DNA of 64,000 bases. It comes from Convolutriloba macropyga. Taxonomy: Eukaryota. Position 1 is the first letter of the stretch. Every line of letters starts with the position of its first letter. The stretch lies in assembly GCF_964194025.1 (NCBI RefSeq), contig NC_134469.1:66960001-67024000 (forward strand). Reading direction: 5' to 3'. This document shows positions 3,030 through 64,000 of this stretch, piece after piece. The notes under the pieces were generated by a model that saw nothing but the letters and a program-made list of their open reading frames with translations, searched no databases and had not been told where the DNA came from. Position numbers and translations under genes: made by a program.

Positions 3030-3296
3030 TTTCTCGTCTGACCACTTGACTTTTCGTCCTCAAAAATTGGATCTCCCTTCACCACTCCGCGCACTTCGCA
3101 TGCTACCCTCATCCCACTCGTAACCCAGCAGGTTTGACCCCCCCCCCCCCCCCCCCCCCCCCTCCTCACTCCGTTCTGTCCCCCCTCCCCCATGAAGCTT
3201 AAGCTAGCCTCCCTGAGTCGCAGCGATCTACTGACAAAGGCAACCGCTCGCCAGTTGTTTCAGAGCAACTCACCCAACGTCAATTGATTGTTTTTA
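3030..3296 (+). mobile_element. 5'-truncated HINE family B copy with poly-C tract
   Basis: The 3' block aagctagcc...ctactgacaaaggcaaccgctcgccagttgtttcagagcaact matches the copies ending at about 23002 and 35905. C-homopolymer at about 3138-3162. Confidence 0.6.
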
Positions 3297-5395
3297 GTTG
3301 TTATGCACAGTTTTTGAATCTTAATAAAATGGTGGGTGACACCAAGCGTGATAAAAATTTCAACAATCTTTTCTAACAACTCTGAAAGAATAGCTGGAAT
3401 TCGATTGCCTACGAGATTGCCTTCGATTATCTACGAGATTTCAAAGCGCATAAATTTTAAAAGTAATTTAAAAAGATCAAAATATCAATTTTGGAGAAAA
3501 AAATTAACTGAAAAATACGCTATATATTTAGTTTTTTTTTGTAGCTATATGGGTAAATTCGCCAAACTGAAAAAACTTCTGTTAAGAAATAATAGTTTTA
3601 AATTACTGATCCGAATTTTGATAATTTAATAGGGGTCTTTTAGAGCTATCTCCTAGAGATTATTTTTAGAGTCAATAGTTAGTAACCAGATTGTGTTAAA
3701 TTTATATAAGCTTAGATCTTTGATTGTTTTTTGAAAATTGTGTTCTCAAAAATTTGTCATGGGTCTAACCTGTCATGGAAAAATTCAAGCCTAGCAATAT
3801 AAATATACTTGAGCAAATGTAAGTATACCAACTGTGCAAACACTGTATTGCATGTTAAGGTACTTTGGCGTCTCAGTATTTTGAGAATTGATTTAAGTCT
3901 TGGGGAATGAGTATTTATGATTTTCTTGATTTCTTGGAAGTCATACAATCAGCATATATCGTATCTTTGAAATCATAGGAGGACTGTGCAAGGAAATACG
4001 TTAATATTTGTATTGTACCATATAGGATCCTTGTTCGACTTTTAAGAAATAGCGACCCGGGTAATGTTTCTAAATTCTTTTAAGGCATCACAACAATATG
4101 CAGATGGGAATGAATGTCTCTTAGTTTAGAAGTCATATTCTTTCTGAGTTCGTTTTGAGACTACAGATGTACGAAGGAAAAGCAGGTTTTTTTAGGAAAT
4201 CAGCTAGTCACAAATGGAGAATCATATGTCACAGGTAGTCGGTTTTTTCTCGAAAAAGTATAGAATTCCTTGGTTTGAGTTCAAAGTTGACAATAGTCGA
4301 ATTGCTGATTTATGGAGAAATAGTTATTGCCTTACTGACTTTTCATTGGGGCTTTTATCGTTTTATATTTTTTACAAGTTTTTGAAAATTTGAACGATTT
4401 TATAAGTTTTGAAAATTTGAACGATTTTATACTGAAACATTTTTCAATTCAAATGGTCGGTTAGTGTTGATTTTTCGTTTTTAAGTGATTTTTCTTGATT
4501 GCTGCTTCCCATTCTTGATTGCCATGTCTCATTGAACACCTTGTTTCTTGCCCTCTGTCGTCGGGATCCTGAAGCAGCTGGCTATCATTTGTTTACTTTT
4601 TAGATCACCTTAAGGCCAATAGATTTGCGTTCGACGTTTTTGGTATTAGTCCCGCTATTTAGTACCCCTTATTTTCACGAAGTAAAAATTCAGTTTTTGA
4701 GTCAGAATTGTTCCAATTTAAAATCACATTTTTGAAACAAATTTTTCACCATTACAGGTAGTCTTTAATCATCTTGCCTACCCTACGCTAGTCATCTTAT
4801 CTTGTCTACTTGTGAAATTCAAAGAAAACGCAGCCTTCGCTCTCCAGAAATTCTAATGCAAAGTTGATGAACATCAACCAAGTTTCAGAGAAAAGAGAAA
4901 GCAAGATCGCAATTTATTTTTATCTTTCTTTTCCTAATGTTGAACACAAATGCAAACTTGGCAATAGTTGAACAAACCTGAAAACATCGCATTTTGTGAC
5001 AACTTTCTTTTTACTGTAAAATTTGATTGTGTTTATCGACTTAACATTGGGATTTTAATTGAACGTTGCGTTTTATCTGAATTACATTGGTAGACGAGGG
5101 GACTAGTGTGGGGAACTCAATGAAATTGTTTTAGAGTGGGCGTTCTATTGCCTCAAAAATTGAATTTTCACTTCGGACAGCTAGGAGGTGCTAACTTACT
5201 TTTCGCGTTCAGTATAGCACGTTCGAGAGAAAATCTAGATCACTAGCTCCCTATAGATTGATTTCAGTTACTAAATCGGAATGTAACAAATAACATTAAG
5301 GGTAAACAAAACATGAGCTCAAAATAGGGCTGCGGAACTGAGCCAGTTGTTTGTATACTCTTGGGTCAGAGAATTCCACGTAGAAGAACGACGTA

Positions 5396-18985: not shown

Positions 18986-19752
18986 GGTTCACGCCAGATG
19001 GTGATTTTTTGATTTCATACACGGCACGGCTGGTACAAAATGATGAAATATTTGACATGTACTCATATTCATTGTATTGGTGGCTGGTCGAACGGTTGTC
19101 GGGTGAGAATCGTGTCAGTATCAAAGTTGCCAAGATGTGTCCCCTGTTTAATGGCCAAAATTTGTCATCAAAAGTTGTGATTTGGATTCACTGTTGGCCA
19201 AATGACGTCAGTAAAATCATCGTCCATGGTATTGACCGCAGCTCCAGTTTGTCAGTTCACATAAATGCTGGGATTTCCACCACTGAAGATGTTGAGTATG
19301 AATCCTTGATAGATGTTTTGCCGAATCCTTCCTTACGAGCTGTTAAAACGAACTCAAAATGTGACCGACATGATTGGAGGGTCTCAATTTCGGTACCCAC
19401 TCAGAGCTCATTCATGCTGCCAATATTTTATAGAGATTTTTGTGTTATTAATGATGGGCTCGTTTATACAAATGGCTTTAGTGTGAAGTTTATTGCATTT
19501 ATTTTTGATGCCGCAAATGATGACGAAGAATTCCAGAATTCAAGCACAGCTGTCAGAGAAGAGAACGGCAGAAGTTTTTGCTGTGGAACCATTAAATCTG
19601 AATCACTAGACGTTAGCTGTGTGTACAGATCTACTATGCGTCTGGACAAAGCGAGGTTTTTGAACTGTTTGGATTGTTTTCCGCTGAGAAATGATGCGAG
19701 ACATCCAAACTTTTGCTACACGAGAACTCTCGGCGCATCCGAATCTGATCAG
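18986..19752 (+). CDS. DCAF15: DCAF15 coding exon 2
   Basis: Acceptor ttttcag| and donor CAG|GTACAT (phase 0). YSYSLYWW and CWPNDVSKIIVHG match remembered DCAF15 YIYHLYWW and EWPSDASKVIVFG. Confidence 0.9.
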
Positions 19753-20078
19753 GTACATTATTTCTTGTTCTTTAGATGTTGAGAATCCTTACTATATTTC
19801 TTGTGATTCAATCGGGTTGAAATCAGCCTATTTCAATTTTGTTATTTTTTTATGATCAGAGAAAACAAGAAGCGCTTTCCAATTCTAGGTTGATAAATTC
19901 TTATGACCAATTTTTGTTCTAAGACTTTACAAAATCTGCGATATGCCCTTGCTGAAACTTTTTGCCTATGAAATCAATTTCACTGAGGTGCAATTATGTG
20001 CCGTATTGCGTTCAATGTAAGAGGATTTTGCATACAGATCATCTTTAGCCTCAACTCTCACTCTCTGTCTTTTTTCAG

Positions 20079-20511
20079 ACTGTCAGCTCTCTTATAGTGG
20101 ACTTTATAGAAGGAGGTGAGTTGAGGGAAGCTCGAACACAGTCTGAAGATTCAAAATGTGGGCACGTGCAGGTAACTGAAGTGAGCATTGGAATTGAGGA
20201 AATGGTGGAGTCAATTTTGACTCACAAACTGTATGCAGTGCAGAAGGAACACAATCTTGAACTGATGCTTGCCGATTACACGACTATTATTTTGACAGTT
20301 TGTCCTCAGTCTCATATCGTAATATTTAAAACACCTGTTGTTTTTATGGATCGAAACACCGGATGCTCGTTCAAGTCGTCATTTGTGATCAAATGGAACT
20401 TCATTTCGGGCAAGTTTGAGGTTCTGAAGAGTTCTGGACTGTCCAAATGTAGCTCAAAGCAGATCGATTACCACAGGGACGTGAAGCCCTTAATTCAGCG
20501 CAAATGGAGGG
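20079..20511 (+). CDS. DCAF15: DCAF15 coding exon 3
   Basis: Acceptor tttttcag| and donor G|GTGAGT (phase 1). DYTTIILTVCPQS and KWNFISGKFEV match remembered DCAF15 DYDIVILEVCPET and AWDLNTGIFET. Confidence 0.9.
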
Positions 20512-20798
20512 GTGAGTAAATGGGTAGTTTATCAAAATTTTAGGATCTAGCGAACCTGTCGATTTGTATCGCACATTGATGATAATAAGAAGCTATCAAT
20601 CTAATTTTTAAAAAAAATGCTGTAATTGATTTTTGTGAATCGGTATTCTGTGTAAATTTTGTGCGATTTGCTTCCAGCATCTCCACGTCTAAGTTTGAAA
20701 TTGCAGTGACATCACAAAGTCATCTTGTAGGCTTCAAATGAGCTAGATATATGCTCAATTGATATTCTCACAATGTTACGCACTGTTGACTGTTTCAG

Positions 20799-22512: not shown

Positions 22513-23002
22513 TGATTGCTCTCAAGCAAAGTTTATAGCAATTATATTAGTCCTGTCGGTCTTTTTAATGCAATTTGTCTGACCAGTTTGACTTTTAGTC
22601 CACAAAACAGGATAAACGGGTAGGGCCCAGCGAGCTTTAAGTGCTCTTAGAGCCTTTCAGCTCACTAGTCTCCAAGTCTGCGATTCACAGAAACTGTTTA
22701 ATACTTTTGGTGTGAAGGGCGGTTCTTGGAGTTCTTGCAGGTTGACCCCACAACCCCTCCACCACATCAGCTCCTCTCACGTCACCCATCCGCAGCCCTG
22801 CACATATTTCAAGCCGCAAGGGCGCCGTGCAGCTAAAATTTGCCCTCCCACTTGCCTCACCCCATCAGCCCCCCGCTTCGCTCACCTCACGCCCCTTCAA
22901 TTAGGCTGAAGCTAGCCTCGATATACCCTGACTAGCTACTGACAAAGTCAACCGCTTGCCGGTCGTTTGAGAGCAATTTGCCCGACGTCAGTCGGTTATG
23001 TT
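22513..23002 (+). mobile_element. HINE family B element (complete ends, C-rich core)
   Basis: 5' attgctctcaagcaaagtttatagcaat (subTIR + hairpin); 3' tcgtttgagagcaatt, hairpin ccgacgtcagtcgg, then ttatgtt. Confidence 0.75.
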
Positions 23003-25218: not shown

Positions 25219-25691
25219 GTGAGGGTGTAAAACACATATTGAGCTTGCAGCAAATATTATTCACAATGTAGTCTTTTTTATTAACTGTTTTCCTAATGTG
25301 ACTAAAATTCTATTCATGTGGGCGGGTTCGTTAATTCTTTTTCCGATAGCCCAAAACTAATTCAGATCAGACAATATATCTCACGATAAATTGAACTCAG
25401 CTCAATTGTACCTGGAGGGGGAAGAGGAAAAAGGGAAACAGTCTTTCTGATCAGTTTTGTAAAGTATCAATTTGAGGTGTTGCTATCTATAAACTAACTG
25501 ATTGTTTGTCAGTTTAGAGATGAGATGGTTGTCCGAAATTTCACGTTGAAATTGAAGGGAAGTAGTGGATATGTTTTTCAGCTCAAAATTGTCTTGCTCT
25601 TTGTTGTTTACATCACTGTGGAAAATAAGTTAACAGCAAACACGTATTTGCATGATTTTCAAGGCCTCTCTGGATTAATTGTTTGTTTCAG

Positions 25692-25842
25692 ATCATCAAG
25701 AGCAACAATGCTCAGAGGCTGGAGCATGAACTACGAACCACTCCTGAACTACTAGACATCATAGCCAGACACGGACTTAGGCCCATCCAGCAGGCCATTG
25801 TTCAAGGAAGTGTGACTCTAGTTCAGATTCTTCTCGAGCATG
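25692..25842 (+). CDS. ASB-type gene exon 2 (ankyrin repeat)
   Basis: Acceptor tgtttcag|. Encodes IIKSNNAQRLEHEL...HGLRPIQQAIVQGSVTLVQILLEH, with donor G|GTTTGT. Splicing gives the canonical ankyrin junction LLEHGADI. Confidence 0.85.
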
Positions 25843-26718
25843 GTTTGTGAAAATCAAATTGTGATTTCCTCAGCATTTAGTGTATGTTATTGAATTGCTC
25901 TTCGATGAAGCTCGGACCAAATATTTGGGCTCTGAAATCGATTTTTCGTGTGAATGTTAGGCTTTTCGTATGTCCTTTCTCTGCTTAACTTCTTTGTTTT
26001 TGGGTGATCTAAATAATGCTCTCATTCAGAAGTTAATCCGCTATCTTAATGCGCAGTAGTTTTACTACTAAAAGTCTAATCAACGCACCAACGTTCTTTA
26101 TTTCGAATCTTAGTGATAGTTTATACTAAGCTCTAACGCCATAATTCTAGCCAGCTTAGTGATATTATAACCGTTGCCCGACTGAAGCAAGGCACAATTG
26201 AACACGCTTGTCGTTTGAGAGCAATTCCTGCGACATTATGGGGTTATGTTTTGTATATTAATCCGCTTCGATTTGAAATTAAAAGTTTTTTTTGCATTTT
26301 TATTGATTTAGCTGGTTTATTTGTCTATTACGAACTTATTGCCCATGTTTAACTCCTCAGCTAATGGTAAGTTTATAGACTAGAAATCTAGATGTTCGAA
26401 TTTTCGAGCAACAATAATTTTTCAGTTTTAATGCAGTCGATTTATTAACAACCGCAACGCAATAGCTGAGACTTCTGTTGGCCTTATCTTGGTTTCTGTA
26501 CGATAAAAAGAGGAATTTGGTTTTTTGCGGTCTTTTACGACTCTAAGCTGTGTATTGGTTTTCTTGGGTCTTTTTTTTCTTGGGACTTTTACTCTACGTG
26601 AAATGACTGACTTTTCGGGTTTGGAAAGTGTTCTTGAGAAAATGGGTCATAAAGATAATCGTTTTTAGCCGGCTTCATTTTTTTGCTCGTTTTTCTTTTT
26701 GTAGAAACATATTTTCTA

Positions 26719-27095: not shown

Positions 27096-27811
27096 GTTTC
27101 ATGCTGCTTCAATATTTAACCCTCTGAAATTTTTTCTACAATAATTTGGGACCTCAATATAGAGTTTCAAGTTGAAAGTAAACTCATATTTCTCAATTTT
27201 TAATGTCAATTTTTGAATTTTTTTTTATTTTTTATTTTTGAGCGGACTGTTTTGCAATTAGTGCATGTAACAACGTCCGTTTAATTTTTCTTGCATTGCA
27301 GTCCTCTGTTTATAACGTAAGGTGATTGTGTTTTACAAAATTTAAATTAAGTAATCCTATTCTGGTGGTAAATTAGAGTTTTTTTTAAAAAAAGCAGTTC
27401 GGGTTTTATCAAACTATCTCCTCTGTCTTATGCATTCCAATTTTTACTTTTGAATTTGTTTCTCGTGAATTTTCTCCCGGTCCGTTTTCAAGCTTAACAG
27501 TTTCGGATATTGTTAACTTTGCCAATATGTTTCTAATAAGACAATAATAAAGAGATAAGGTCAACTGATTGTATGTAACTGATTGTGCTAACTGATTGAA
27601 GGTGTTATTTTAGAGCAGCTATTAAACGCAGCATTAAGTTATACCGCCTCTGAATTAAAATATAACATCTCTTTTTAGGTCTGTTGTTCAGATTGAACAA
27701 AGCTATGGCAGCTATTTTCTGGCGATCTGCCAGCTATGTTTTCTTCATTATCGAATTGGTATTACATTAGTTTTCCATTCTGATAGTTTTGAAAGGATTC
27801 CTTATTTTAAG

Positions 27812-28402
27812 GCGCTGACATAACCGTTCTGAAACCAGATGGGTCCTCTCTGTTACACCTTGCAGTGCTTAACTCGAGTTTGGAGCTGGTGCGATTGTTG
27901 CTCAGAGCAGGTTGTGATGCTCGACTAGCCGACGAGAGAGGCGAGACGCCTCTCTTTCTCGCTGTCCACTTGAACGACTTGAAAATTGCGAAAGATTTGC
28001 TGGACAATCTTGCTGACCCTTTAGTACGAGATGCAAATTGTTGCAATGTATTTCACTTGTGCGCTTTGGGAGATAAAGCTCAGGAACTTATTGTGCTGTT
28101 ATGTGAAGCTGTTGGGGATGAGAAGAGTTTAGAAACGGCGCTTTGTGCTTCCTGCTTACGGAGCGAGTTTTCCACGGAGAAAACAAGTAGTCCCATCGAA
28201 ACGGCGATTTTGACAAAATCTATTACTCCTCTAAAGGTGTTTTTATCATTTCTGTCATCTGATGTCCTCAATTTGCGATTCCAGTGCCTCATTCAACATT
28301 GTATCAAGACCAAAACTTCCCTTGAGATCATTGAAGTTTTAGTGGAGGCTGGCTATAACTACAGACGAGAACTATCTGGGCTCAATTTGGACGACTTTTT
28401 CG
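27812..28402 (+). CDS. ASB-type gene exon 3 (ankyrin repeats)
   Basis: Acceptor ttttaag|. Encodes GSSLLHLAV...LLRAGCD, GETPLFLAV and NVFHLCA. Donor G|GTGAGT is phase 1. Confidence 0.9.
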
Positions 28403-28848
28403 GTGAGTTTTTGACATAGTTGTGATTGAACTGTGATCTTGTAATGATTTATCCTCTTCAAATGAGCTTCAAGCAGTAATAGGGCAGCTTTGTAATTTGT
28501 CTGCCATCATGTTATTCCAAAAATTAATCTATTTAATTTTATTTTTTTTTAAATTTAATTGTTTAAAGTAATATTAATGAATGCTTGGATGATTTGAGGT
28601 TACGTTTTTTTCCAAATTTCTTTAACTTTTTGGTGATAATCTAATAATCCAAATTTTTGGTGATCCCGCATATTGAGCAATATCGGATGTTGTAAAATTT
28701 ATTAAAAAATTTGGCCGACAATGTGCTGAAAATTGTGCAGTATGTTATTTTTATAGCGTCACATAAACTTAGCGGAAGCTAGTGTCATAAATGTTACTTC
28801 CTTTGGTAATTTTTGTTCATTGATAGATCAATAATTCTTAATAATTTT

Positions 28849-35503: not shown

Positions 35504-35905
35504 TTAATTGCTCCCAAACGAAATTTGTAGCAATTATATCATTCCTGTGGTCTTATTTATGCAATGTTTTGCTCGACAGATTTTCGCGTCTGACCCTTGA
35601 CTTTGCGTGCTCAAGAACACTGTAACAGGTGGCGCCCATGGGACTAGCTCACTAGTCTCACTCATCCCCCAATCCCCAATCCTGCACAATGTTCAGGCCG
35701 CGAGGACGTGGGCCCCGTGCATCCAAAGCCCCCCCCATCGTTGCGTCATCAATTACCCTTCCCAGTGCATCCCCCACGCTGAGCTCACTGAACACCCGTT
35801 CAATTATTCTAAAGCTGGCCTTTCTAAACCGTAGCTAGCTACTGACGAAGGCAACCTCTCACCGTTCGTTTGAGAGCAATTCGCCCGACGTTAGTCGGTT
35901 ATATT
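35504..35905 (+). mobile_element. HINE family B element (complete ends, C-rich core)
   Basis: 5' ttaattgctcccaaacgaaatttgtagcaatt; 3' ttcgtttgagagcaattcgcccgacgttagtcggttatatt. Confidence 0.75.
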
Positions 35906-50064: not shown

Positions 50065-50758
50065 TACGTTTTGCTAGCTAACTAGTGATGGTTGTGGAAC
50101 CACCCCCCCCCCCCCCGCCCCTCCAAGAGGTGGGGCTGAACGTTACAAGTTGTATGCCTTCTTGTAAGATAGAAAAAATCCGCATTTATACTCTTGTTGC
50201 TAAATTAGTCAGTTCGAGCATTCTCTCATGCTATGAAAACTTGCTGACGTCATATTTGTTTTGACTTAATAGTGGCAAATAGTTAAATCAAGCTTCAATA
50301 GTAGTTAAAATTCCTCAAATTTAGAAGCCAACAAAACTCTGGTACATCAAGCATTAAGTTTTAGAGGTGTATACTCCTTAATTGATTCATTTTTGTGATG
50401 TTACGCTTTTGCTAATCTTTATGGCACATGCGTTTTCTTGTTTTCTTCCAAGTCTTGTTTTCTTTCATTAAAATGTGTTGTTTTCAGAAACTTGAAATGG
50501 AGGAGACGAATAGTTGCTGCATGAGAAGTCTTTTTCATAAAGCTGCAAAATATTTCAAAAGTAGCTCAGAACATTTTATTTGCGAATCCATATTTCTGCT
50601 TCAGATCAAAATGAGCTTAACAAGCAAACAGAACTTTAAATCTTTAAGTTGGCATTGTTAATTTGTATTTTTTGAAAGAGCAGCTTTATGATACAGACTG
50701 TCAGCAGGTAGAGTACATTCAGCTGAGCAGTGATTGAGCTGAGTGATTGTTGGGAGAA

Positions 50759-50854
50759 ATGATGCACCCTGTGCTGAAAGAGGCGCTTTTCGCCAATTGG
50801 GAGACCATTGTGTCCAATATGCCTTTCGACCTCATTCTAAATAAGTTCAACTGG
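50759..50854 (+). CDS. CARD-domain protein, coding exon 1 (N-terminal part of the CARD); joins 63015..63306, gene continues beyond the window
   Basis: MMHPVLKEALFANWETIVSNMPFDLILNKFNW with a perfect donor TGG|GTAAGT (phase 0), in frame with the acceptor at 63015. Not in the ORF track. Confidence 0.7.
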
Positions 50855-51249
50855 GTAAGTACTATACTTTGATATTAAAGCTGAGTGCTTATTCATTTGA
50901 TTGATATTTTAGCTTTCAAATGCGGAATTTATATTTAAACAATGAATTTTTTCACGATAATTATTCTAAGTTCTCGTGGCGCTTAGTTGCTCTCGTAAGA
51001 TGTATGCGCCCAAAGCTTGGGTCCTGCTAAGACAAACTTGAATCTTAGTCGCATGACCGGTCGTTGCTTAGCAGAACTCAGGTTAAGAAAGGCAACTGCA
51101 CAGGGCAGAAAGCTAATTGAACAAGTTTAGCCGCCGCGAAATGTTGGATCCTGAATATTCGCTTACCCTCGATTCGTAAATGGGGTTATTTTATCCGATG
51201 TATTTTAATTGTTTTTCAAATGAATTCCTCCATACATTTTTTATTCTTT

Positions 51250-52332
51250 TTAATAGTCGCGAAGCGATAGCGGCTATTATTGGGTACATCGTGAATTTGA
51301 ATTGTATTGGGGGGCTCTCTTTTTATGATGGTTTCACACATTTTTAAATGACTTTGATCTTTCAAAACGGGATAAACAGGTAAATCCCAGCGGGCATTAA
51401 GTTTCGTTAGAGGCCCAAAGTGGGCATTAGTATCCTTTCAAGTGCTTAGAGTGGTGCAGCTGCTGGTATGGCCTTAATTTAAGGTTAAAATGTCATTTTT
51501 AGGAGTTTTTAGCTCAAATTGTTGCAATTTTTCACGTTTTTTTTTCGTTTATTTTTAGTTTTTGATTTTTAATTTTTTGTTTGATTAGTCTTAGGTTGAA
51601 CTTTTCGAAAGTTGATGAGGGTCTTTTGCCAGACCAAAAATTACTTGAAATCTTCAGGGGCTAATGCGTATTTTTCAGGTCTGGCAGGTTTGGTTTTGAA
51701 CATATTTTTGTATTAGGTATATTTAGAGGGATCAAATTTTGCCTGTTCGTTTGATTGTTTAGGGTTCCCAAATTTTGAGATGTTTGCTTTTCGGCTGTAG
51801 ATGTTTGCTTTGCTTTTTGTTCAATAGAATTGCTTGTCAGGTAGTGTACTTCAAAGTTTTTCATTTTCTTCTTTGGATTGTTTTTCCGGACTTGTACTGC
51901 TATGTTTTCTAGTTCGTCTGTCGTCTCCATCAATGATTTTTACGACCTGATCTCTTGGAATTGACTTTTGGTGACTTCTACTGCTTTGCAGTTATAATTT
52001 GTTTGCGTGACGACATTTGTTCTACTTTTAGGTCAATTGTGTGACTTGACTCACTCAAAAAATGACTTCTGAATTTAATGAACTTCGAGTTTTATGAACA
52101 TTTACTAGTTAAATGTCAATAGTGTGCACATAAGTGGTGCCAAAGGTATATGCCCTAAATCTTGAGTATTGGAGTCTTGAGTTTTTGATTTTGAATTTTA
52201 ATTTTGATAAAGCTCCATCAGAGAGTTTTCCTTTTTGAGCGCATGTATATCTTATTTCTTTAGATTTTTCAATTAAATGGAAGGACACAAGCGTTTATCG
52301 CGGCTGTTTTCCGGTAATCTGACGGCTATGTT
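51250..52332 (+). mobile_element. HINE family A element with nested family D element (about 51290-51908)
   Basis: 5' taatagtcgcgaagcgatagcggctatt is nearly identical to 31028. D-type tttgaattgtattgggg follows at once, and the D 3' end lies at about 51875-51907. A sequence then resumes (ttcgtctgtcgtctccatc) up to gcggctgttttccggtaatctgacggctatgtt. Confidence 0.7.
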
Positions 52333-55300
52333 CTGTAAAATGAGGACATTTGTGGTTTTGAGGTCAATGAGGCCAGTTGATAGAGTTAAATTCCATCTTA
52401 AAATATTATAGGTAACAACCTAATTGTCGTTATGCTATAAATCAAGTGGAATTTTTAAATAGATGATAGTGATTGCGAGAATTATAATGATATTATTGGT
52501 CTTGCCGGCATTCTTTACAATCCAATGAACTGAAATTAGTTTTGCGTTGTATTATTCTTTTTAAAAAAATGATTAGATTGTTCAGAGAGATCTAATCAAA
52601 AAAGGAAAGTGGTCAAAAAAGTTCTTAGAATTTTTTTGTTTTAAGATAAAATGCAGTTGGCGATTTGTCTCAACCAACTGTTTTGGCTACATTTTCTGCT
52701 AACTTTTTAAACACTCAGCATTTTAAAAATGAAAAATGGCATCAAATATGCCTATTTAGGCCCCTTTGTCCAGTTTTACCGGTAGTGCAGACATGTTAAC
52801 TGCCTTCATATTCTTTAAATTTTAAACCTCCGTAACTCCTGGGAAAAAGCGAAAAAATTTCTTATCCTCAGTTTTGGGCTTATTGTACCTCGATTCCTCA
52901 CAGTTTTCCGGAATTAATCAAAAATGCACAATTTTCTTTGGTATTATGATTTTCGTTTGCCAAAAATACATTTACTCAATGTTTTAGAACTTCGTTTTTA
53001 ACAGCCGCGCAGGGATAGGAAGGCCAGTTTTGGTCTCACCGTTGACTTCTGCAATAAAAATATTTTTGTATCTTTTTCATCTAAATTACAGGCTAGCTTG
53101 TTTTCAGTTAGTGTAGTTAACAACAAGTCCAGTTTATTTTGAAATAACGTCTAACGAATCGGTATTGTGATTTTTGAGTAAAGCTCATGGTTTTTAAGGC
53201 TCAGACAAATATTTTGTAATTTAAGTAAATTTTGATTTTTTGGCAGAATTTGATGTTCTTCTTGTCTTATGACTAGTCCAATTAATCAATTATCTAGTTC
53301 GATAGAGCAATTAATCGAAAGAGCAGATTAATCAATTATCTAGTTCGAGGGAGCCATTAATGAAACTAACACTCTCAGTGGTGATAAATATCTTTTTAAT
53401 TATATAAATCGACAAGTATCCAAAATTAAAGATTTATGAAATTTTGACCTTTTGGTCAAATTAGCTCAATATGGAGGGAGCAATTAATGAAACTAGTTCG
53501 ATATGGAGGGAGCAATTAATGAAACTAACGCTCTCAGTGATGATAAATATCTTTTTAATTATATAAATCAACAAGTATCCAAAATTAGATTTATGAAATT
53601 TTGACCTTTTGGTCAAATTAGCTATTTCGTTAAAATTTTGAACATTTTTTTTTTGTTTTAATGAAGAAGCAGAAGGCGCAAAATTATTTTTGGTCTGGCT
53701 GAGGATTTTTTTAAAAAATATTAGGATTGTAATGGCGCGCTGTATATCCTTTTCGAAGTACTTTTTACGGTTTTTTTTGTGTTCTTGTTATTTACAGAAC
53801 AGAATTATTTCGAAACTTTTATTGACAAGTCAAGTATACCTTCCAATAAAGGCCAATGAACAAAAATGATAGTTTCAGCTGAAAGCATATGATTTTTTAG
53901 CTCCAACACCGCTTGTGTAAAATTGTTTGTGAAAATTCTGCATGAATTCTTTGTTAATTTTTAGTCTTTTTAACATTATTATATAACATAGTTGCTTGGA
54001 GCAATGGAATGGTTTTCAACTTTTTAAAAGAACGAAGTTTAATTTTCAGAGATAGTGAAATTTTTTCTAAAATTTTTTGGCTTTTACCTAGGTTAACGAT
54101 CTTTATGAGCCAATGAATTTTTTAAGGCTTGGAGTTGAGATACTGAATATCCTCTGGAGACATGGAAATTGTTCCGAAGATATTATTTTTTATAAGTTTT
54201 AGCAACATTTCTTTAAATTTTGCAGATGATTTCGTTTTTTTTTTGAACTTTCGTTGTTTTCTGAGTTAAGCGATCTTCAAGGGATAATGAATATTTTTCA
54301 GGTCTTGCTGGTCTGGTTTTGAACATTTTTTGCTTTAGGTATAATTAGAGGGAGCAAATTTTGCCTGTTTATTTGATTGTTTTAGTTTCCCAAATTTTGT
54401 ATTTTTGTGTTTTGGCTGGCATTGTTCAATAGATCTGCTGGTCAGGTAGTGTACTTCTCTAATTTTTCATTTTGTTATTTGGATTGTATTTGCGGACTTG
54501 TAATGCTATGTTTTCTAGTTCGTCGGTCGTCTCCATTGATGTTTCTTGCAAACTGACTTCTTGGAATTTACTTCTGGTGTCTTCTTCGGCGTTGCAGTTA
54601 ATATTTGTGTGCGTGACGACATTTGTTCCACTTTTAGGTCAATTGTGTGACTTGCCTCACTCAAAAAATGACTTTTTAACTCGCTTAATGAACTTCAAAA
54701 TTTTTATGAACAGTTACTTTTTAAGTGTCAATGGCATGCATCCAAGTAATGCCAAACGTATATACCCTAATTCTTGAGTATTGGAGTCTCGAGTTTTTGA
54801 TTTTGAATATTAATATTGATAAGGCTCCATCAGGGCGTCATCTTTTTGAGCGTATGGGGCTCATAAAATTGACAGGCCGAATCTAAGCCAAAAGTCTAGT
54901 GGTCTACTAGAGGAATGGTGGTCAATCTGTCTATCTTATTTCTTTCCATGGAAGGCCACAAGATTCTAGCGCGGCTATTTTCTGGTAAGCTGCCGGCTAT
55001 GTTCCGAAAATTGCGGACATTTGTGATTTCGAGGTCAATGAGGCCAATTGGAGGAGTTAAACTCCATCTTAAAGTATTCTAAGTAACAACCGAATTGTTA
55101 TGCTACAAATCAAGGCGTTCTTTACAATCCAATGAACTGAAATTAAATTTGTGTTGTTTTGTACTTTTTAAATTAATTGGTCAGATTGTTCAGAGAGATC
55201 GAATCGAAAATTGAAAAAGGTAAAAACTGTTGTTAAGGTTTTTCGTTTTAAGATAAAATGAAGTTTTAAGATAAAACTGTTTTGGCTGATTTTGCTGCTA

Positions 55301-58300
55301 ACTTTTTCAACACTCGGCTTTTTTTCAAATAAAAAATGGCATCAAATCTGCCTATTTAGGCGAGTTTGTCCAGTTTGACCGGTAGTGCAGACATGTTAAC
55401 TGCTTACACATTCTTTTAATTTCAAACCTCCGTAAATCCTGGGAAAAAGCGAAAAAATTCTTTCTCAGGTTTGGGCTTATTGTACCTCGATTCCTCAGAA
55501 AGTCCAAAAGCCAAAAAGCAAGCCAAAGCTCATGGTTTTTAAGGCTCCGACAATTTTTTTGTATTTTAATTAAATTTTGATTTTTTGGCAGCATTTGATG
55601 TTGTTCTTGTCTTATGACTCAGTCGAAATTAATCAAATATCTAGTTCGGTATCGAGGGAGCAATTAATGAAACTAACACTCTCAGTGATGATAAATATCT
55701 TTTCAATTATGTAAATCGACAAGTATCCCAAATTAAAGATTTATGAAATTTTGATCTTCTGGTCCAATTGGCTATTTCGGTAAAATTTTGAACATTTTTT
55801 TGTTTTAATGAAGAAGCAGAAGGCGCTAAATTATTTTTGGTCTGGCTGAGGATTTTCAAAATATTAGGATTGTAATGGCGCGCTGTATATCTTTTTCGAA
55901 GTACTAATTTTTCATTTTGTTCTTTGGATTGTATTTGCGGACTTGTAATGCTATGTTTTCTAGTTCGTCGGTCGTCTCCATTGATGTTTCTTGCAAACTG
56001 ACTTCTTGGAATTTACTTCTGGTGTCTTCTCCGGCGTTGCAGTTAAAATTTCTTTGCGTGACGACATTTGTTCTACTTTTAGGTCAATTGTGTGACTTGA
56101 CTCACTCAAAAAATGACTTCTGAATTTAATGAACTTCGAGTTTTATGAACATTTACTAGTTAAATGTCAATAGTGTGCACATAAGTAGTGCCAAAGGTAT
56201 ATGCCCTAAATCTTGAGTATTGGAGTCTTGAGTTTTTGATTTTGAATATTAATTTTGATAAAGCTCCATCAGAGAGTTTTCCTTTTTGAGCGCATGTATA
56301 TCTTATTTCTTTAGATTTTTCAATTAAATGGAAGGACACAAGCGTTTATCGCGGCTGTTTTCAGGTAATCTGACGGCTATGTTCTGTAAAATGAGGACAT
56401 TTGTGGTTTTGAGGTCAATGAGGCCAGTTGGTAGAGTTAAATTCCATCTTAAAATATTATAGGTAACAACCTAATTGTCGTTATGCTATAAATCAAGCGG
56501 AATTTTTAAATAGATGATAGTGATTGCGAGAATTATAATGATATTATTGGTCTTGCCGGCATTCTTTACAATCCAATGAACTGAAATTAGTTTTGCGTTG
56601 TATTATTCTTTTTTAAAAAAATGGTTAGATTGTTCAGCGAGATCTAATCAAAAAAGGAAAGTGGTCAAAAAAGTTCTTAGAATTTTTTGTTTTAAGATAA
56701 AATGCAGTTGGCGATTTGTCTCAACCAACTGTTTTGGCTACATTTTCTGCTAACTTTTTAAACACTCAGCATTTTAAAAATGAAAAATGGCATCAAATAT
56801 GCCTATTTAGGCCCCTTTGTCCAGTTTTACCGGTAGTGCAGACATGTTAACTGCCTTCATATTCTTTAAATTTTAAACCTCCGTAACTCCTGGGAAAAAG
56901 CGAAAAAATTCTTATCCTCAGCTTTGGGCTTATTGTACCTCGATTCCTCACAGTTTTCCGGAATTAATCAAAAATGCACATTTTTCTTTGGTATTATGAT
57001 TTTCGTTTGCCAAAAATACATTTACTAAATGTTTTAGAACTTCGTTTTTAACAGCCGCGCAGGGATAGGAAGGCCAGTTTTGGTCTCACCGTTGACTTTT
57101 GCAATAAAACTATTTTTGTATCTTTTTCATCTAAATTACAGGCTAGCTTGTTTTCAGTTAGTGTAGTTAACAACAAGTCCAGTTTATTTTGAAATAACGT
57201 CTAACGAATCAGTATTGTGGTTTTTGAGTAAAGCTCATGGTTTTTAAGGCTCAGACAAATATTTTGTAATTTAAGTAAATTTTGATTTTTTGGCAGAATT
57301 TGATGTTCTTCTTGTCTTATGACTCAGTCCAATTAATTAATTATCTAGCTCGATAGAGCAATTAATCGAAAGAGCAGATTAATCAATTATCTAGTTCGAG
57401 GGAGCCATTAATGAAACTAACACTCTCAGTGATGATAAATATCTTTTTAATTATATAAATCGACAAGTATCCAAAATTAAAGATTTATGAAATTTCGACC
57501 TTTGGTCAAATTAGCTCGATATGGAGGGAGCAATTAATGAAACTAGTTCGATATGGAGGGAGCAATTAATGAAACTAACACTCTCAGTGATGATAAATAT
57601 CTTTTTAATTATATAAATCAACAAGTATCCAAAATTAAAGATTTATGAAATTTTGACCTTCTGGTCAAATTAGCTATTTCGTTAAAATTTTGAACATTTT
57701 TTTGTTTTAATGAAGAAGCAGAAGGCGCAAAATTATTTTTGGTCTGGCCGAGGATTTTTTTAAAAATATTAGGATTGTAATGGCGCGCTGTATATCCTTT
57801 TCGAAGTACTTTTTACGGATTTTTTTGTTTTCTTGTTATTTACAGAACAGAATTATTTCGAAACTTTTATTGACAAGTCAAGTATACCTTCCAATAAAGG
57901 CCAATGAACAAAAATGATAGTTTCAGCTGAAAGCATATAATTTTTTAGCTCCAACACCGCTTGTGTAAAATTGCTTGTGAAAATTCTGCATGAATTCTTT
58001 GTTAATTTTTAGTCTTTTTAACATTATTATATAACATAGTTGGTTGGAGCAATGGAATGGTTTTCAACTTTTTAATAGAACGAAGTTTAATTTTCAGAGA
58101 TAGTGAAATTTTTTCTAAAAATTTTTGGCTTTTGCCTAGGTTAACGATCTTTATGAGCCAAAGAATTTTTTAAGGCTTGGAGTTGAGATACTGAATATCC
58201 TCTGGAGACATGGAAATTGTTCCGAAGATATTATTTTTTATAAGTTTTAGCAACATTTCTTTAAAGTTTGCAATTGATTTCGTTTTTTTGAACTTTCGTC

Positions 58301-60200
58301 GTTTTCTGAGTTAAGCGATCTTCAAGGGATAACGAATATTTTTCAGGTCTTGCTGGTCTGGTTTTGAACATTTTTTGCTTTAGGTATAATTAGAGGGAGC
58401 AAATTTTGCCTGTTTATTTGATTGTTTTAGTTTCCCAAATTTTGTATTTTTGTGTTTTGGCTGGCATTGTTCAATAGATCTGCTGGTCAGGTAGTGTACT
58501 TCTCTAATTTTTCATTTTGTTCTTTGGATTGTATTTGCGGACTTGTAATGCTATGTTTTCTAGTTCGTCGGTCGTCTCCATTGATGTTTCTTGCAAACTG
58601 ACTTCTTGGAATTTACTTCTGGTGTCTTTTCATGCGTCGCAGTTAAAATTTGTGTGCGTGACGACATTTGTTCCACTTTTAGGTCAATTGTGTGACTTGC
58701 CTCACTCAAAAAATGACTTTTTAACTCGCTTAATGAACTTCAAAATTTTTATGAACAGTTACTTTTTAAGTGTCAATGGCATGCATCCAAGTAATGCCAA
58801 ACGTATATACCCTAATTCTTGAGTATTGGAGTCTCGAGTTTTTGATTTTGAATATTAATATTGATAAGGCTCCATCAGGGCGTCATCTTTTTGAGCGTAT
58901 GGGGCTCATAAAATTGACAGGCCGAATCTAAGCCAAAAGTCTAGTGGTCTACTAGAGGAATGGTGGTCAATCTGTCTATCTTATTTCTTTCCATGGAAGG
59001 CCACAAGATTCTAGCGCGGCTATTTTCTGGTAAGCTGCCGGCTATGTTCCGAAAATTGCGGACATTTGTGATTTCGAGGTCAATGAGGCCAATTGGAGGA
59101 GTTAAACTCCATCTTAAAGTATTGTAAGTAACAACCGAATTGTTATGCTACAAATCAAGGCGTTCTTTACAATCCAATGAACTGAAATTAAATTTGTGTT
59201 GTTTTGTACTTTTTAAATTAATTGGTCAGATTGTTCAGAGAGATCGAATCGAAAATTGAAAAAGGTAAAAACTGTTGTTAAGGTTTTTCGTTTTAAGATA
59301 AAATGAAGTTTTAAGATAAAACTGTTTTGGCTGATTTTGCTGCTAACTTTTTCAACACTCGGCTTTTTTTCAAATAAAAAATGGCATCAAATCTGCCTAT
59401 TTAGGCGAGTTTGTCCAGTTTGACCGGTAGTGCAGACATGTTAACTGCTTACACATTCTTTTAATTTCAAACCTCCGTAAATCCTGGGAAAAAGCGAAAA
59501 AATTCTTTCTCAGGTTTGGGCTTATTGTACCTCGATTCCTCAGAAAGTCCAAAAGCCAAAAAGCAAGCCAAAGCTCATGGTTTTTAAGGCTCCGACAATT
59601 TTTTTTGTATTTTAATTAAATTTTGATTTTTTGGCAGCATTTGATGTTCTTCTTGTCTTATGACTCAGTCGAAATTAATCAAATATCTAGTTCGGTATCG
59701 AGGGAGCAATTATTGAAACTAACACTCTCAGTGATGATAAATATCTTTTCAATTATATAAATCGACAAGTATCCAAAATTAAAGATTTATGAAATTTTGA
59801 TCTTCTGGTCCAATTGGCTATTTCGGTAAAATTTTGAACATTTTTTTGTTTTAATGAAGAAGCAGAAGGCGCTAAATTATTTTTGGTCTGGCTGAGGATT
59901 TTTTTCAAAATATTAGGATTGTAATGGCGCGCTGTATATCTTTTTCGAAGTTTTTTTACTTATGGGTTTTTTGATGTTTTCTTGTTATTTACAGAACAGA
60001 ATTTTTCGAAACTTTTATTGACAAGTCATGTATACCTTCAAATTAAGGCCAATCGACAAAAATGATATTTTCAGCCGACGCATATGATTTTTTAGCTTCA
60101 ACACCGTTTGCGTAAAATTGTTTGTTAAATTTCTGCTTGTATTCGTTGTTGATTTTTAGTCTATTGACTAAATTTTATTAATGGCATATCCAATCGGCTT
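51670..60200. repeat. Tandem array: two near-identical copies of about 4.05 kb (about 51990-55903 and 56040-59950), each made of two older diverged sub-units
   Basis: Identical blocks are offset by about 4045 bp (e.g. 54472 vs 58517). A HINE-A 3' end recurs at about 52300, 54970, 56350 and 59015. A more diverged partial unit follows at about 60420-61900. Confidence 0.92.
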
Positions 60201-62738
60201 CCTAAGCAATAAAAGAAATCTATTTATTATTGGAAAGCTCAAAATTGCTATGTCGTACGGTTTTTAGAAAATAGGTTAGAAAAAATCAATGGTGTTTTTA
60301 GATTCGCCGCTTTCAATCTTGTTTCTACCATCTTTTAGCGTGGTGTTAGCAAACAGAGTGGCATTAAATTTCGTTCAATTTTCACTAAATCTGTTCAAAT
60401 TGTTCACGATTGTCCGATTGCTTTTAGGTTTTAAGATAAAGGGATTTGGCGAAGTGTCTAAATCAACTGTTTTAGCTAAATTTTAAGCTTATTTTTTTTT
60501 TAAAAAAAACTCGGCGTTTTTCATTACGAATGGAATCCAATATGCCTATTTTGCTAATGCAAACACTTGAACTGCTTACACAATCTCGGTTTTGGGCTTA
60601 TCTCAGATTTGGGCTTATTTTACCTCCGGGTCCTCAAAAGTTTTCCGGAAATGACATTTTTGCGGTCTTTCTCTAATTTAACAAATATTAACAAAAAGTG
60701 CATAATTTACATTTGACTTATGTTTTTGAGTTGCCGAAAAAAATTACGCATTGTTTTAGATCAATTGCTGACAGCGGTGCAGTGATTACGAGGCCAGTTT
60801 TGGTCTCATCGTTGATTTCTGCAAAGAAATTTTTTTGAAACTTTTTCCCAATTACAGACAAGACTGTTTTCATTTGAAAGGGTAGTTAGCAACAGGTTTC
60901 ATTTGTTTTGAAATAAGATCTAACAATTAAATATTGAATTTTGTGTTTTTTGAGTAAATCTCATGGTTTTTATGGCTCCGATGTATTTTGGTAAATTTTA
61001 AATGGCCTTTTGATTTTTCGGCAGTATTTGATGTTCTTTTTGTGGCCGCATGAATAAAAGCATTTATTTAATTATTAAATGGATTAGACGGGAAATAATG
61101 GTTTGAGACGTTGATACTGGGAGTGTTTGAAAAGTTTTCAGGTTTTGACAATTTCCTATTTTGACGTTTGCTTTTTGCTGTCTTGTCCGATCATCGCATT
61201 ATCGGCATGTTAATTACAAGTCGCATATCACATTTTTGGCGTTGAAAGAAGAAGGTGCAATCGATTACATCAACTATTTTATGTGAATCGATTAATGAAG
61301 CTATCTATAACTTTCAGTTCATAAATTTTGGTTTTTCAGAATTATAACGCGTTCCAAATTTCATATTTTGTTTTTGATGTATTGACATTTTCCTTTAATT
61401 AGCTATTTTGGTAGTATTTGGAATATTTTTGTTTAATGGCGAGGCAGCGATGGCAAAACCAGTTTTGGTCTGGTTGTGGAATTATCTATACAAAATATTA
61501 TGATGGTAATGGCGCGCTGTATTTTCTTTTTGAAGTACTTTTTACTTATGACTTTTTGAGGTTTTTATGTTATATACAGAACAGAATGATTTCAAATGAT
61601 TTATTGACAGGTAAAATATATCTTCCAATACAGGCCAATTATCATAAATGTTAATTTCAGCTGAAAGCATATTTTTTTTGGCTTTAACACCGTTTGCGTA
61701 AATTTGTCTGAAAGTTCTGCATGTATTGGTTGTTAATTTGTAGTGTAACGACTAAATCTCACTATTGACATGTCCAGTTGGCTTCCTATTCAGTAATAAT
61801 GTAATCTGCTTAAATTTTTTTTAACTGGAAGCTCAATGTTGCGATGTCTAACGATTTTTAAAAAATTCAAAAAAATTAATAGTTTTTTTGAGATCGGACA
61901 CTTTTTATCGTCTTTCTGCCACTTTTCAGCGTGATCTGAGAGAGAGAGGCCGCATCTTTTTTATAATCAATATGATTTTAGTCTGCATCCATTTCTATTA
62001 GTAGTATGCAACCATTTCTACTGGTTTTGGTCGCTGATTTTCAAATAAAGGTTTGATAATTTCTGGTTTTTGATGTTTGCTTTTGCTGTTTTGTCCGATT
62101 ATCACATTAACGAAATATTAATTATAATTTACATATCACGTTTTTGGCATTGAAGGAAGAATGCGCTTGTTTATAATATTTTTAAGTGAATTTCTGATTT
62201 TTTAGGCTTCCACGCCGTTTCCTCGCAAAATTGAATTAACTTTTTGATTTTTGCCTTTTATTTGTTCTTTTTTAGTCATGTGAAATTCTGGATAATGACA
62301 GGTCTCAATTGTTTTTTTACGAAATTATAAGTAAAGCCATGAAATTTTTTCAGTTGAATTCTAATGGCTTTGCTGTCTTTGAATTTAATTGTTTTCCAAA
62401 ATTGTAAACGTTTTTTCTAAGTTTGCCCTTTTTCTTTTCTGTCTAGTTGATAATTAGTTTCAATAAAGAGAAGTCACTTTTCTTTTCTGGTTTAGTTTGG
62501 TTTAGTTTTGTTCTTATCTGATGCTATTTGGACTTTTTCAAAGTTTAAATATGGACAGACAATGAGTCGTACGTGTTTGTTGTTTGTTTTTGTTGTGTCA
62601 TATCTCTTACTTTCGTTAATGGCAGGGATCATCAGCCCTGCAATGTATCATTGTTTAATTTGTTCAGTGGTTTGAGCCTAAATATATCTCTTCCTTTTCC
62701 CATCTCTTCCTCATTTGGCGGAGAAGTCAAAATTAGGC

Positions 62739-62908
62739 AATTGCTCTCACTCCGAACTAGTGAGGGCACAAGGGCCTTATAGCCGAGTTGTGATTGCTTC
62801 AGTGGAGGACTCCGTAGGTGACGGGTGCGAATGGCACCTTAGTCGGATGAGTTTGCACCCATACACAAAAATTTATCTAGGCTAGGCCGACGTTTGTCGG
62901 TTTATGTT
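62739..62908 (+). mobile_element. Short HINE-B subtype copy with tRNA-like segment
   Basis: Hairpin tgctctcact-ccgaact-agtgagggca; A-box-like TAGCCGAGTTG at 62780; B-box-like GGTGCGAAT at 62824. The block tttgcacccata...atttatctaggcta is shared with 27012-27045. 3' end is ccgacgtttgtcgg + tttatgtt. Confidence 0.6.
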
Positions 62909-63014
62909 TTATATTATTTTAATATTCAATAAAATTTTTAATTTTGATTTTTACACAAACGGGAAAGATACAAAAGTTATAATGATCGGGTCTCATTGTT
63001 TTGTTATTTTATAG

Positions 63015-63306
63015 GCATTCTCAACAGATGAGTACGAGTCTATCATTTTGGAATCAGGTGAGACATCCAGGCGTGAGCAGCTGTTGCTCATCTTGTCTCA
63101 GAAAGGTGATGCGCTATTCTACGAATTGATCAAGTACCTTCAGTTTAATGAAGCTCAACAACAGCTTCAGTCGCAGAAAGAAGAGCAAGGTAACAGTGGT
63201 GTTGATGGATCCTTTTCAAGTTACTGCACTGCGCGAGTGGCAGGACAGTCAGAAATCGTGCGCAGTCTAGTTGGACACATAGAGTACTCGTACGAGATAC
63301 AAGGAT
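63015..63306 (+). CDS. CARD-domain protein, coding exon 2 (rest of CARD + linker + start of next domain); partial gene
   Basis: Acceptor ttttatag|. AFSTDEYESI...SRREQLLLILSQKGDALFYELIKYLQ fits the CARD pattern (t.ee.e.I...r..LL..L..KG..af..f...L). Donor T|GTGAGT at 63307. Confidence 0.75.
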
Positions 63307-63629
63307 GTGAGTAATTATGACTATAATGGCTCCTGCCTTCTGAGATTTTTTTTTGTAAAACTACAAACTTAAATTTGGGTCCTTTTTTACGAGAACTTAC
63401 TGAGAATAGACGTGGGAAGACAAACAACATGACGATAATGCAGTAAGCATACTTGAAAGAAACAGCAATAGCTTGTCATAATAGATAATTATCGATAGCG
63501 ACATCGTAAAGTATCGATTACGACAATATTTTACTACATTCGATTATCATAATAAACGAAAGTATATAAGCAAAGCCTAGAATCAACTGCAATTGCCTTA
63601 CATTAAAATGATCCGATTTTTTTTATCCG

Positions 63630-64000
63630 ATTCGAGAGCAATTCTTCTGACATTAGTCGGTTTATGTTTCTAATTGCCCTCTAACGAAATTAGCGCTTAT
63701 ACTAGCCATGCGGTCTTTTTAATAGCCGCCAAGCGATAGCTGAGGTTATTATTGGCCTTTTCTTGGTTTTTACGACTCGAAGAGGAGTATTGGCTTTCTT
63801 AAGGTTTTTTTTTACCGGAAGTACTATTTGTTCAGGCAGTGTTTTGACCTAATGGTGGAAGTGAGTAAAATTGCCGAGGGAACCAGAGAAATTTTTTTTG
63901 TTTTTACGCTGCGTTCATTGAATGACTTTTTGACTTTGAAAAGAGTTTTTGAGAGTTTGGTGCATTTAGATGACAGTTTGTAGCCGTGTTTTCGTCCATT
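63630..64000 (+). mobile_element. Cluster of HINE termini: B 3' end, B 5' end, A 5' end, D/E-type 5' end
   Basis: ttcgagagcaatt...gacattagtcggtttatg (63631-63666); taattgccctctaacgaa (63671); aatagccgccaagcgatagc (63721); ttacgactcgaagaggagtattgg (63770). Confidence 0.6.

Follow-up and report, generated by a model that had tools for sequence, protein, structure and literature searches.

A CARD-encoding 5′ gene end in Convolutriloba macropyga, an acoel, with a possible continuation into a STAND-type NTPase

The CARD, a death-fold module of six helices, interacts with further CARDs and serves as a recruitment domain in cell-death and immune signalling. Towards the end of a 64,000-nucleotide stretch (the window) of chromosome 2 (OZ077300.1) from the acoel worm Convolutriloba macropyga, two exons on the plus strand appear to encode such a module, and the question raised by this locus is which domain the CARD is joined to. 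The first-pass annotation had read the product as a CARD followed by the possible start of a Clp/torsin-type AAA+ ATPase.

Exon structure and surrounding repeats

The features on which the gene structure is based are the following:

50759–50854, plus strand: exon 1, of 32 codons including the start codon(s) (MMHPVLKEALFANWETIVSNMPFDLILNKFNW); donor TGG/GTAAGT, phase 0.
50855–63014, plus strand: intron 1, mostly a tandem duplication of about 4.05 kb with inner repeats of 1.4–2.6 kb.
63015–63306, plus strand: exon 2, which has acceptor ttttatag/G and donor GAT/GTGAGT and comprises 97 codons plus 1 nt.
63015–63185, plus strand: CARD part of exon 2 (exon residues 1–57), read as CARD helices 2/3 to 6.
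63589–64000, no strand assigned: high-copy dispersed repeat in the next intron, which reaches the window end and breaks short-read contigs.

Exon 1 opens with ATG ATG, and an in-frame TGA (50744–50746) lies five codons 5′ of it. Since exon 1 ends and exon 2 begins in phase 0, the two are joined in frame across an intron of 12,160 bases; the acceptor of exon 2 sits immediately 3′ of an in-frame TAG. The in-frame pair of exons claimed by the first-pass annotation is therefore placed correctly, with canonical splice sites and matching phases, and the peptide quoted there, FSSYCTARVAGQSEIVRSLVGHI, is found as written in the exon 2 translation. The GC content of the exons is 0.44–0.48 vs 0.32–0.36 in their flanks, with exon 1 at 0.46 vs 0.36 in its 3′ intron. 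As part of the preferred explanation, and with the same reserve as the whole, the two exons are tentatively regarded as the 5′ end of a so far uncalled multi-exon gene. The same window also contains a netrin ORF, which extends to position ~12.5 kb only.

The repeat families of intron 1 (D1–D13) form pairs that are 96–100% identical at a spacing of 4045–4050. An ORF taken from one of these repeats has no Pfam match, and tblastn finds no second CARD-like exon in intron 1 or in the rest of the window. Over the dispersed repeat at the window end, the summed contig depth rises to 1e3–8e5 vs 30–60 over exon 2, and many loose ends are present.

The CARD and its occurrence in sequence records

Residues 2–57 of exon 2 match positions 31–84/85 of the Pfam CARD profile (PF00619) with an E value of 3e-4 and 21.1 bits for exon 2 alone, a half-domain score slightly below the gathering cutoff of 23.9 bits. 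Exon 1 alone (32 aa) gives no Pfam match, being too short for a score of its own. Its 32 residues would nevertheless be of the right length for the 30 profile positions missing from exon 2, and we read them as helix 1 and the beginning of helix 2 of the CARD. Furthermore, the profile match begins precisely at the exon junction, which favours a full CARD. The half-domain match, under the cutoff as it is, and the length of exon 1 together support the earlier claim that the predicted product starts with a CARD. Modelled by AlphaFold from its single sequence, exon 2 reaches a mean pLDDT of 50.8, with helices at residues 4–12, 19–30 and 33–55 and no reliable tertiary fold; the model is too poor for a fold search.

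Among 1.84 billion representatives of predicted proteins, none containing exon 2 is found by HMMER, and a word search restricted to products of 53–170 residues is also empty. The sole HMMER match, a bacterial repeat protein aligned in five stretches, was rejected as spurious. No close paralogue of the exon 2 CARD is detected among predicted proteins, no PDB chain is similar to exon 2 at E ≤ 10, and no contig on record was found to encode the exon 2 ORF. The four sequencing runs listed with exon 2 are genomic DNA, with contigs that cross both exon borders at even depth. Among the runs listed, at most four per study, none recorded as RNA holds exon 2; because of this small number per study, the absence is weak evidence.

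These observations bear on whether the locus is a living gene or an unexpressed relic, i.e., the 5′ remnant of a CARD gene, decaying or orphaned, that repeat insertions severed from its 3′ part. The relic reading is consistent with the exon being in no gene model, with the lack of an RNA-recorded run among those listed, and with the repeat content, since a recent 4-kb tandem duplication fills intron 1 and a repeat of very high copy number stands at the start of the next intron. On the other hand, both exons are intact, their splice sites are good, a start codon is present and their GC content is exon-like, and the RNA argument carries little weight for the reason given above. A relic is quite improbable, and we infer that the gene is expressed.

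The end of exon 2 and the tail motif

Beyond the CARD, the product is predicted to continue through a short linker into a 39-residue tail. The relevant features are:

63162–63200, plus strand: Q/E-rich linker (EAQQQLQSQKEEQ), overlapping the end of the CARD match; pLDDT below 50 at residues 54–65.
63190–63306, plus strand: 39-residue tail GNSGVDGSFSSYCTARVAGQSEIVRSLVGHIEYSYEIQG with an hhGQxxhhxxhxxxh motif, ending 1 nt into a split codon (phase 1) at the donor GAT/GTGAGT.
63190–63195, plus strand: alternative donor AAG/GTAACA (63189/63190), without G at +5; its use would drop the tail and keep the same phase.
63312–63314, plus strand: in-frame TAA, two codons 3′ of the donor; the unspliced product would be CARD-only, with 131 residues ending ..EIQGCE.

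The tail looks exonic and coding. Its GC content is 0.48 vs 0.33 in the terminal 1 kb of intron 1 and 0.32 directly downstream, its frame stays open for 41 codons (a length reached by ~8% of random starts in the non-coding DNA of the window), and it ends at a GTGAGT donor. The two donors are separated by 117 nt, exactly 39 codons, and hence the phase is preserved whichever is used. As the frame leaves the window at a phase-1 donor, the effector part would be encoded further downstream.

If the donor at 63306 were left unused, translation would end with GCE-stop and the gene would encode a CARD-only protein of 131 residues; a related possibility is a small adaptor in which a non-enzymatic module, for instance a coiled coil or death domain, comes after the CARD, as is the case in CRADD, BCL10 or CARD9. 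CARD-only regulators are known, the stop codon lies only two codons 3′ of the donor, and the Q/E-rich stretch could start a coiled coil. As in BCL10, CRADD and CARD9-type proteins, no domain other than the CARD can be recognised in the available sequence, and such a stretch follows it. Against this, GC drops sharply exactly at the strong GTGAGT donor, whose phase 1, in contrast to a CARD-only or adaptor gene, implies more coding exons; moreover, the range of the word search spans the 131-residue product, and none was found. The AATAAA closest to the TAA (63551–63556) is uninformative, because chance alone would yield this hexamer more often than it is seen in the window. A CARD-only or adaptor product is, overall, improbable.

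The case for an ATPase depends on the motif of the tail. Aligned to E. coli ClpB without gaps, the tail matches best at residues 569–587 (RVIGQNEAVDAVSNAIRRS), the helix ahead of the Walker A of the second nucleotide-binding domain (NBD2), with 8 of 19 residues identical and the pattern R-V-x-G-Q-x-E-x-V...I in common; the score of 30 is reached by 13% of shuffled tails and is not significant. In BLASTP of the tail vs ClpB, the motif alignment is not reported. The 19-residue core of the tail scores 24 equally against ClpB-D2, DnaX (ADVVGQEHVLTALANGLSL) and, among 15,054 residues compared, an unrelated MdlA/B ABC-transporter segment; the ClpX motif is not picked out by it. The ClpB match of the tail and the DnaX match of the core both fall on the helix before Walker A, 29–37 residues ahead of the P-loop; at this distance, a P-loop would be expected just inside the next exon. 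Within the window, no Walker A or other NTPase feature is present; a Walker A (GxxGxGK[ST]), Walker B (hhhhDE), sensor 1 and arginine finger, like the specific motifs and winged-helix domains of NB-ARC or NACHT proteins, would be encoded by exons past position 64000. The tail alone has no match in Pfam (Torsin included), NCBIfam or the PDB even at E ≤ 10, a search of low power on 39 residues, and the tail with the linker has no Pfam match. The start of a RIG-I-like helicase (RxYQxE...GKN) was also considered and rejected as improbable, since what comes after the motif would not lead on to a P-loop at the required spacing.

The equal scores of DnaX and the MdlA/B segment, together with the failure to pick ClpX, indicate that the likeness is that of a generic hhGQxxhhxxhxxxh helix. 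Such a helix occurs in many AAA+ clades, and STAND NTPases carry a similar one, more often with GR than with GQ at this position. At most, the tail is a putative AAA+/STAND-like helix of generic type preceding a P-loop, bearing no Clp/torsin signature. Of the fusion proposed in the first-pass annotation, the CARD half is supported, whereas the shuffling result, the tie with DnaX and MdlA/B and the empty family and PDB searches give no particular support to the assignment to Clp/torsin.

A fusion between the CARD and a classical AAA+ domain of a ring-forming, GQ-type clade (Clp/Hsp100 NBD2, torsin, clamp loader or another), in which a hexameric ring of a non-STAND ATPase would display the CARDs, can still be weighed as such. 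It is favoured by the placement of the tail on the pre-Walker A helix of ClpB NBD2 and by its GQ, which rather than GR is usual in classical AAA+ proteins, ClpB-D2, ClpX and DnaX among them. These points are countered by the fraction of shuffles that reach the ClpB score, by the equal scores of DnaX and of a segment that is not AAA+, which with ClpX unpicked leave nothing specific to the Clp/torsin clade, and by the absence of a match to Torsin, other AAA+ family models or the PDB. In addition, the residues after the helix (EYSYEIQG) are unlike those of ClpB (RRSRAGL). To our knowledge, no CARD-classical-AAA+ protein has been described in animals, for which reason the prior is low, and no known ClpB/Hsp104 or torsin family member carries a death-fold domain; the resemblance to these families amounts to the non-significant identity described above. 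The classical AAA+ fusion is very unlikely.

The possible downstream domain and its closest relatives

CARD-caspases are the commonest invertebrate CARD architecture and have an N-terminal CARD followed by a linker of 30–60 residues. The gene could encode a caspase-9/-2-, Dronc- or CED-3-like initiator caspase, where the CARD would be the prodomain, the tail part of the variable linker between prodomain and p20, and the protease would follow downstream. Apart from this frequency, the absence of significant similarity between the tail and anything else is as expected for a linker, and an N-terminal CARD followed by low-complexity sequence is shared with these proteins. Unlike such a linker, however, the tail is predicted (with low confidence) to be helical and amphipathic rather than disordered, it bears an NTPase-like motif, and no caspase feature, p20 included, lies within the window; the catalytic His (SHG) and Cys (QACxG) would be encoded beyond it. 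An initiator caspase is unlikely, and it ranks after a STAND (Apaf-1/NLR-like) NTPase and before a CARD-only or adaptor protein.

The reading that we tentatively prefer is an uncalled CARD gene that continues into an NTPase of the STAND/AAA+ superclass, of Apaf-1/CED-4 or NLR type; everything on the downstream domain is what we infer from the part in the window. The product would begin with the CARD, followed by the short Q/E-rich linker and the tail, and the tail (RVAGQSEIVRSLVGHI) would form the helix immediately ahead of strand beta-1 and the Walker A loop of a P-loop oligomerising NTPase. Nucleotide-driven assembly into a ring or disc would then cluster the CARDs, and the clustered CARDs may in turn draw in a caspase or adaptor that bears a CARD and activate it. 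Counted in favour of this STAND reading are the splice sites and their phase, the upstream stop, the position of the CARD at the junction, the GC content, the open tail, the placement on ClpB and DnaX, a helix predicted at exon 2 residues 80–96 (single-sequence model, low confidence), the acoel NACHT proteins and NLRs reported, and the CARD-NTPase architectures established in animals. Counted against it are the missing NTPase features within the window, the non-significance of the motif, GQ where GR is usual, the absence of exon 2 from predicted proteins and from the RNA-recorded runs among those listed, and the lack of a homologue showing the architecture.

The established animal CARD-NTPase architectures are CARD-NB-ARC and CARD/Death-NACHT. 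Apaf-1, CED-4 and Dark (CARD-NB-ARC) have an N-terminal CARD of ~90 residues, a linker of ~40–60 residues and an hh-x-x-x-x-hh-x-x-h-x-x-x-h helix before the P-loop, an arrangement that the predicted acoel product resembles, and they form the kind of nucleotide-driven CARD platform proposed here. In contrast to these proteins, no NB-ARC is found in the window and the acoel motif has GQ vs the usual T/G-R of STAND proteins; the acoel sequence has no detectable similarity to any solved chain of Apaf-1 or CED-4. With invertebrate NLR-like proteins (CARD/Death plus NACHT, with or without LRR), the gene shares the N-terminal death-fold domain, although no NACHT is present in the window. Furthermore, expanded NLR families usually comprise many paralogues, in contrast to the acoel CARD, which has no close ones among predicted proteins. 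Both C. macropyga and further acoels have been reported to possess NACHT proteins and NLRs (PMC12849515).

Several pathways of immune signalling that are otherwise conserved have been reported as missing from acoels (PMC12849515); no description of acoel cell-death machinery was found in the literature searched. What the present evidence supports is a CARD gene whose partner domain would be encoded past the end of the window. Only if the classical AAA+ fusion, very unlikely as it is, were true would the locus represent a new kind of death-fold platform. As a CARD gene absent from the gene models, it is a small but useful addition to the immune and cell-death inventory of acoels, and if its downstream part encoded either a caspase or an NTPase akin to Apaf-1 or the NLRs, the gene would constitute an apoptosome- or inflammasome-type node in the acoel lineage.

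Gene start and CARD

The start of the candidate CARD gene is well supported and comprises two exons:

50759-50854, forward strand: exon 1, 32 codons, ATG ATG start, donor TGG/GTAAGT
63015 to 63306/63307, forward strand: exon 2, 97 codons plus one base, acceptor ttttatag, donor GAT/GTGAGT

Five codons ahead of the ATG ATG of exon 1 the frame is closed by a TGA, and an in-frame TAG stands directly before the start of exon 2 at its acceptor. The exons meet in phase 0, which keeps the frame intact over an intron of 12,160 bases; with open frames and splice sites present, the predicted splice of about 12.2 kb from the first-pass annotation is upheld. The intron is dominated at 51857-61700 by a unit of about 4.05 kb, present in two tandem copies (96-100% identity) and itself composed of older sub-repeats at intervals of 1.4-2.6 kb; no protein-family match was found in this unit.

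In profile searches run on each exon singly, exon 2 gives a match to Pfam CARD (PF00619) in which residues 2-57 cover profile positions 31-84 of 85 (E 3e-4). The score of 21.1 bits is slightly lower than the 23.9-bit cutoff, as expected, because exon 2 carries only two thirds of the domain. Exon 1 alone, with 32 residues too short for Pfam, gives no score; this length fits the 30 profile positions absent from the exon 2 match, and the residues of exon 1 resemble the first CARD helix and the beginning of the second. The CARD is well supported, and its predicted assembly from two exons stands as first described. The single-sequence AlphaFold model of exon 2 (pLDDT 50.8) is too uncertain beyond helix positions. 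A tblastn search of the window finds no further CARD-like exon.

End of exon 2

The last 39 residues of exon 2, GNSGVDGSFSSYCTARVAGQSEIVRSLVGHIEYSYEIQG (63190-63306, hereafter the tail), follow a Q/E-rich linker and have a GC content of 0.48, compared with 0.33 in the last kilobase of the intron and 0.32 directly downstream. Beyond an earlier candidate donor, AAG/GTAACA (63189/63190), 41 codons pass without a stop, as they do at about 8% of random non-coding positions in the window. This donor shares the phase of GTGAGT at 63307 and lacks the +5 G. GTGAGT is the stronger of the two, the GC drop coincides with it, and a one-base length polymorphism in the T-run at 63346, found in both runs of a single sample, is compatible with non-coding sequence beyond 63306. 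Consequently, the end at 63306, where the first reading placed it, is the more likely. Within exon 2 (63028-63057), contigs of three runs break near 63043-63057, where depth is also raised; this may reflect either a shared k-mer or a heterozygous site.

A TAA lies two codons beyond the GTGAGT donor, so an unspliced transcript would yield a CARD-only protein of 131 residues. Weighed, as are all the readings here, on priors from known animal architectures and weak motif evidence, a CARD-only protein or non-enzymatic adaptor is an unlikely product and ranks third.

Records and neighbouring features

When exon 2 was searched with HMMER against 1.84 billion protein representatives, the sole match was a bacterial repeat protein, rejected as spurious; neither a word search for exon 2 proteins of 53-170 residues nor an exact look-up of the exon 2 ORF among recorded sequences gave a hit. 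Since no protein was found although a netrin from the same genome is in the 1.84-billion collection, exon 2 is most simply read as missing from all gene models. The annotation of this genome is still to come, according to the genome note, in which OZ077300.1 is chromosome 2 of Convolutriloba macropyga, assembly txConMacr16.3 (PMC13650328). The four sequencing runs containing the stretch are genomic DNA, and their contigs span both exon borders at even depth. None of the runs listed (at most four per study) is recorded as RNA, which is weak evidence; an unexpressed relic is improbable and ranks below the CARD-only product. Downstream, 63589-64000 consists of a repeat of very high copy number, where the summed depth of contigs reaches about 8e5 (about 35-60 in unique DNA) and variant joints and loose contig ends are numerous.

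The window also holds the following:

701-2536, forward strand: intact single-exon netrin-like gene, 611 residues, Laminin_N and laminin EGF repeats, signal-peptide-like start
19009-19779, forward strand: open stretch with DCAF15_WD40 match (E 6e-11)
25656-25847 and 27811-28416, forward strand: ankyrin-repeat exon(s), Ank_2 E 3e-13 on the second
2975-3284, 22616-22906 and 35601-35835: short islands rich in GC (0.54-0.63) within AT-rich DNA

The netrin ORF, the sole window product found recorded, is present in OZ077300.1 (GCA_964194025.3) and an ENA contig. The DCAF15_WD40 stretch probably belongs, as an exon, to a gene for a DCAF15-like CUL4 substrate receptor; the adjoining 156-codon open stretch (20049-20516, forward strand) has no Pfam match. 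The ankyrin-repeat exon(s) lie on the same strand as the CARD exon, 22 kb before it; no sign of their belonging to the CARD gene was seen, given the in-frame stop ahead of the CARD start codon. Regarding the islands, a run in 3050-3284 translates as poly-Pro in one direction and as poly-Gly in the other, and the translations of those near 22.7 and 35.7 kb look alike, so these two may be copies of one element.

The tail motif and the downstream part

The tail had been taken for the start of a Clp/torsin-type AAA+ domain. It has no match in Pfam, NCBIfam or the PDB sequence set even at E <= 10, a search of low power on 39 residues; Pfam includes Torsin and other AAA+ models spanning the helix before Walker A. 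When real AAA+ proteins from E. coli K-12 are compared, the top ungapped local match anywhere in ClpB is RVAGQSEIVRSLVGHIEYS versus RVIGQNEAVDAVSNAIRRS (8/19 identical). This ClpB segment is the helix 37 residues before the NBD2 Walker A, and the pre-Walker-A motif as first described is therefore correct. Shuffled tails reach the same score somewhere in ClpB in 13% of cases, and the motif alignment is absent from the BLASTP output of tail against ClpB. Furthermore, when the 19-residue core is compared with 15,054 residues of E. coli protein, three segments share a score of 24: ClpB-D2, a stretch of the clamp-loader subunit DnaX (ADVVGQEHVLTALANGLSL, 29 residues before its Walker A) and an unrelated MdlA/B ABC-transporter segment; ClpX's own motif is not among them.

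Taken together, the equal scores, the unpicked ClpX and the shuffles suggest that the tail resembles the generic hhGQxxhhxxhxxxh helix before strand 1 and the P-loop (Walker A) of many AAA+ clades, a lead and not a family assignment. With DnaX and MdlA/B scoring equally, 13% of shuffles doing as well and no Pfam Torsin match, the tail shows no clear Clp/torsin-type signature. A CARD fused to a classical AAA+ ring, for which this non-significant 19-residue resemblance is the sole support, is the least probable reading.

A similar helix, with GR replacing GQ, occurs in STAND NTPases (the Apaf-1/NLR type, with NB-ARC or NACHT) such as NB-ARC proteins. CARD partners in animals are caspases, Apaf-1/CED-4, NLRs, RIG-I-like helicases and small adaptors. 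A CARD-caspase, in which the tail would be the prodomain linker, ranks second and is rather unlikely. We tentatively place first a downstream STAND NTPase of Apaf-1/NLR type, a possible reading helped by the NACHT proteins and NLRs reported in Convolutriloba macropyga (PMC12849515). If the STAND reading is right, nucleotide-dependent oligomerisation would bring the N-terminal CARDs together, and the clustered CARDs would recruit a CARD-bearing caspase or adaptor through homotypic binding, a familiar mechanism. The locus is an uncalled CARD-domain gene in an acoel: the gene is new, and the kind of gene is known.
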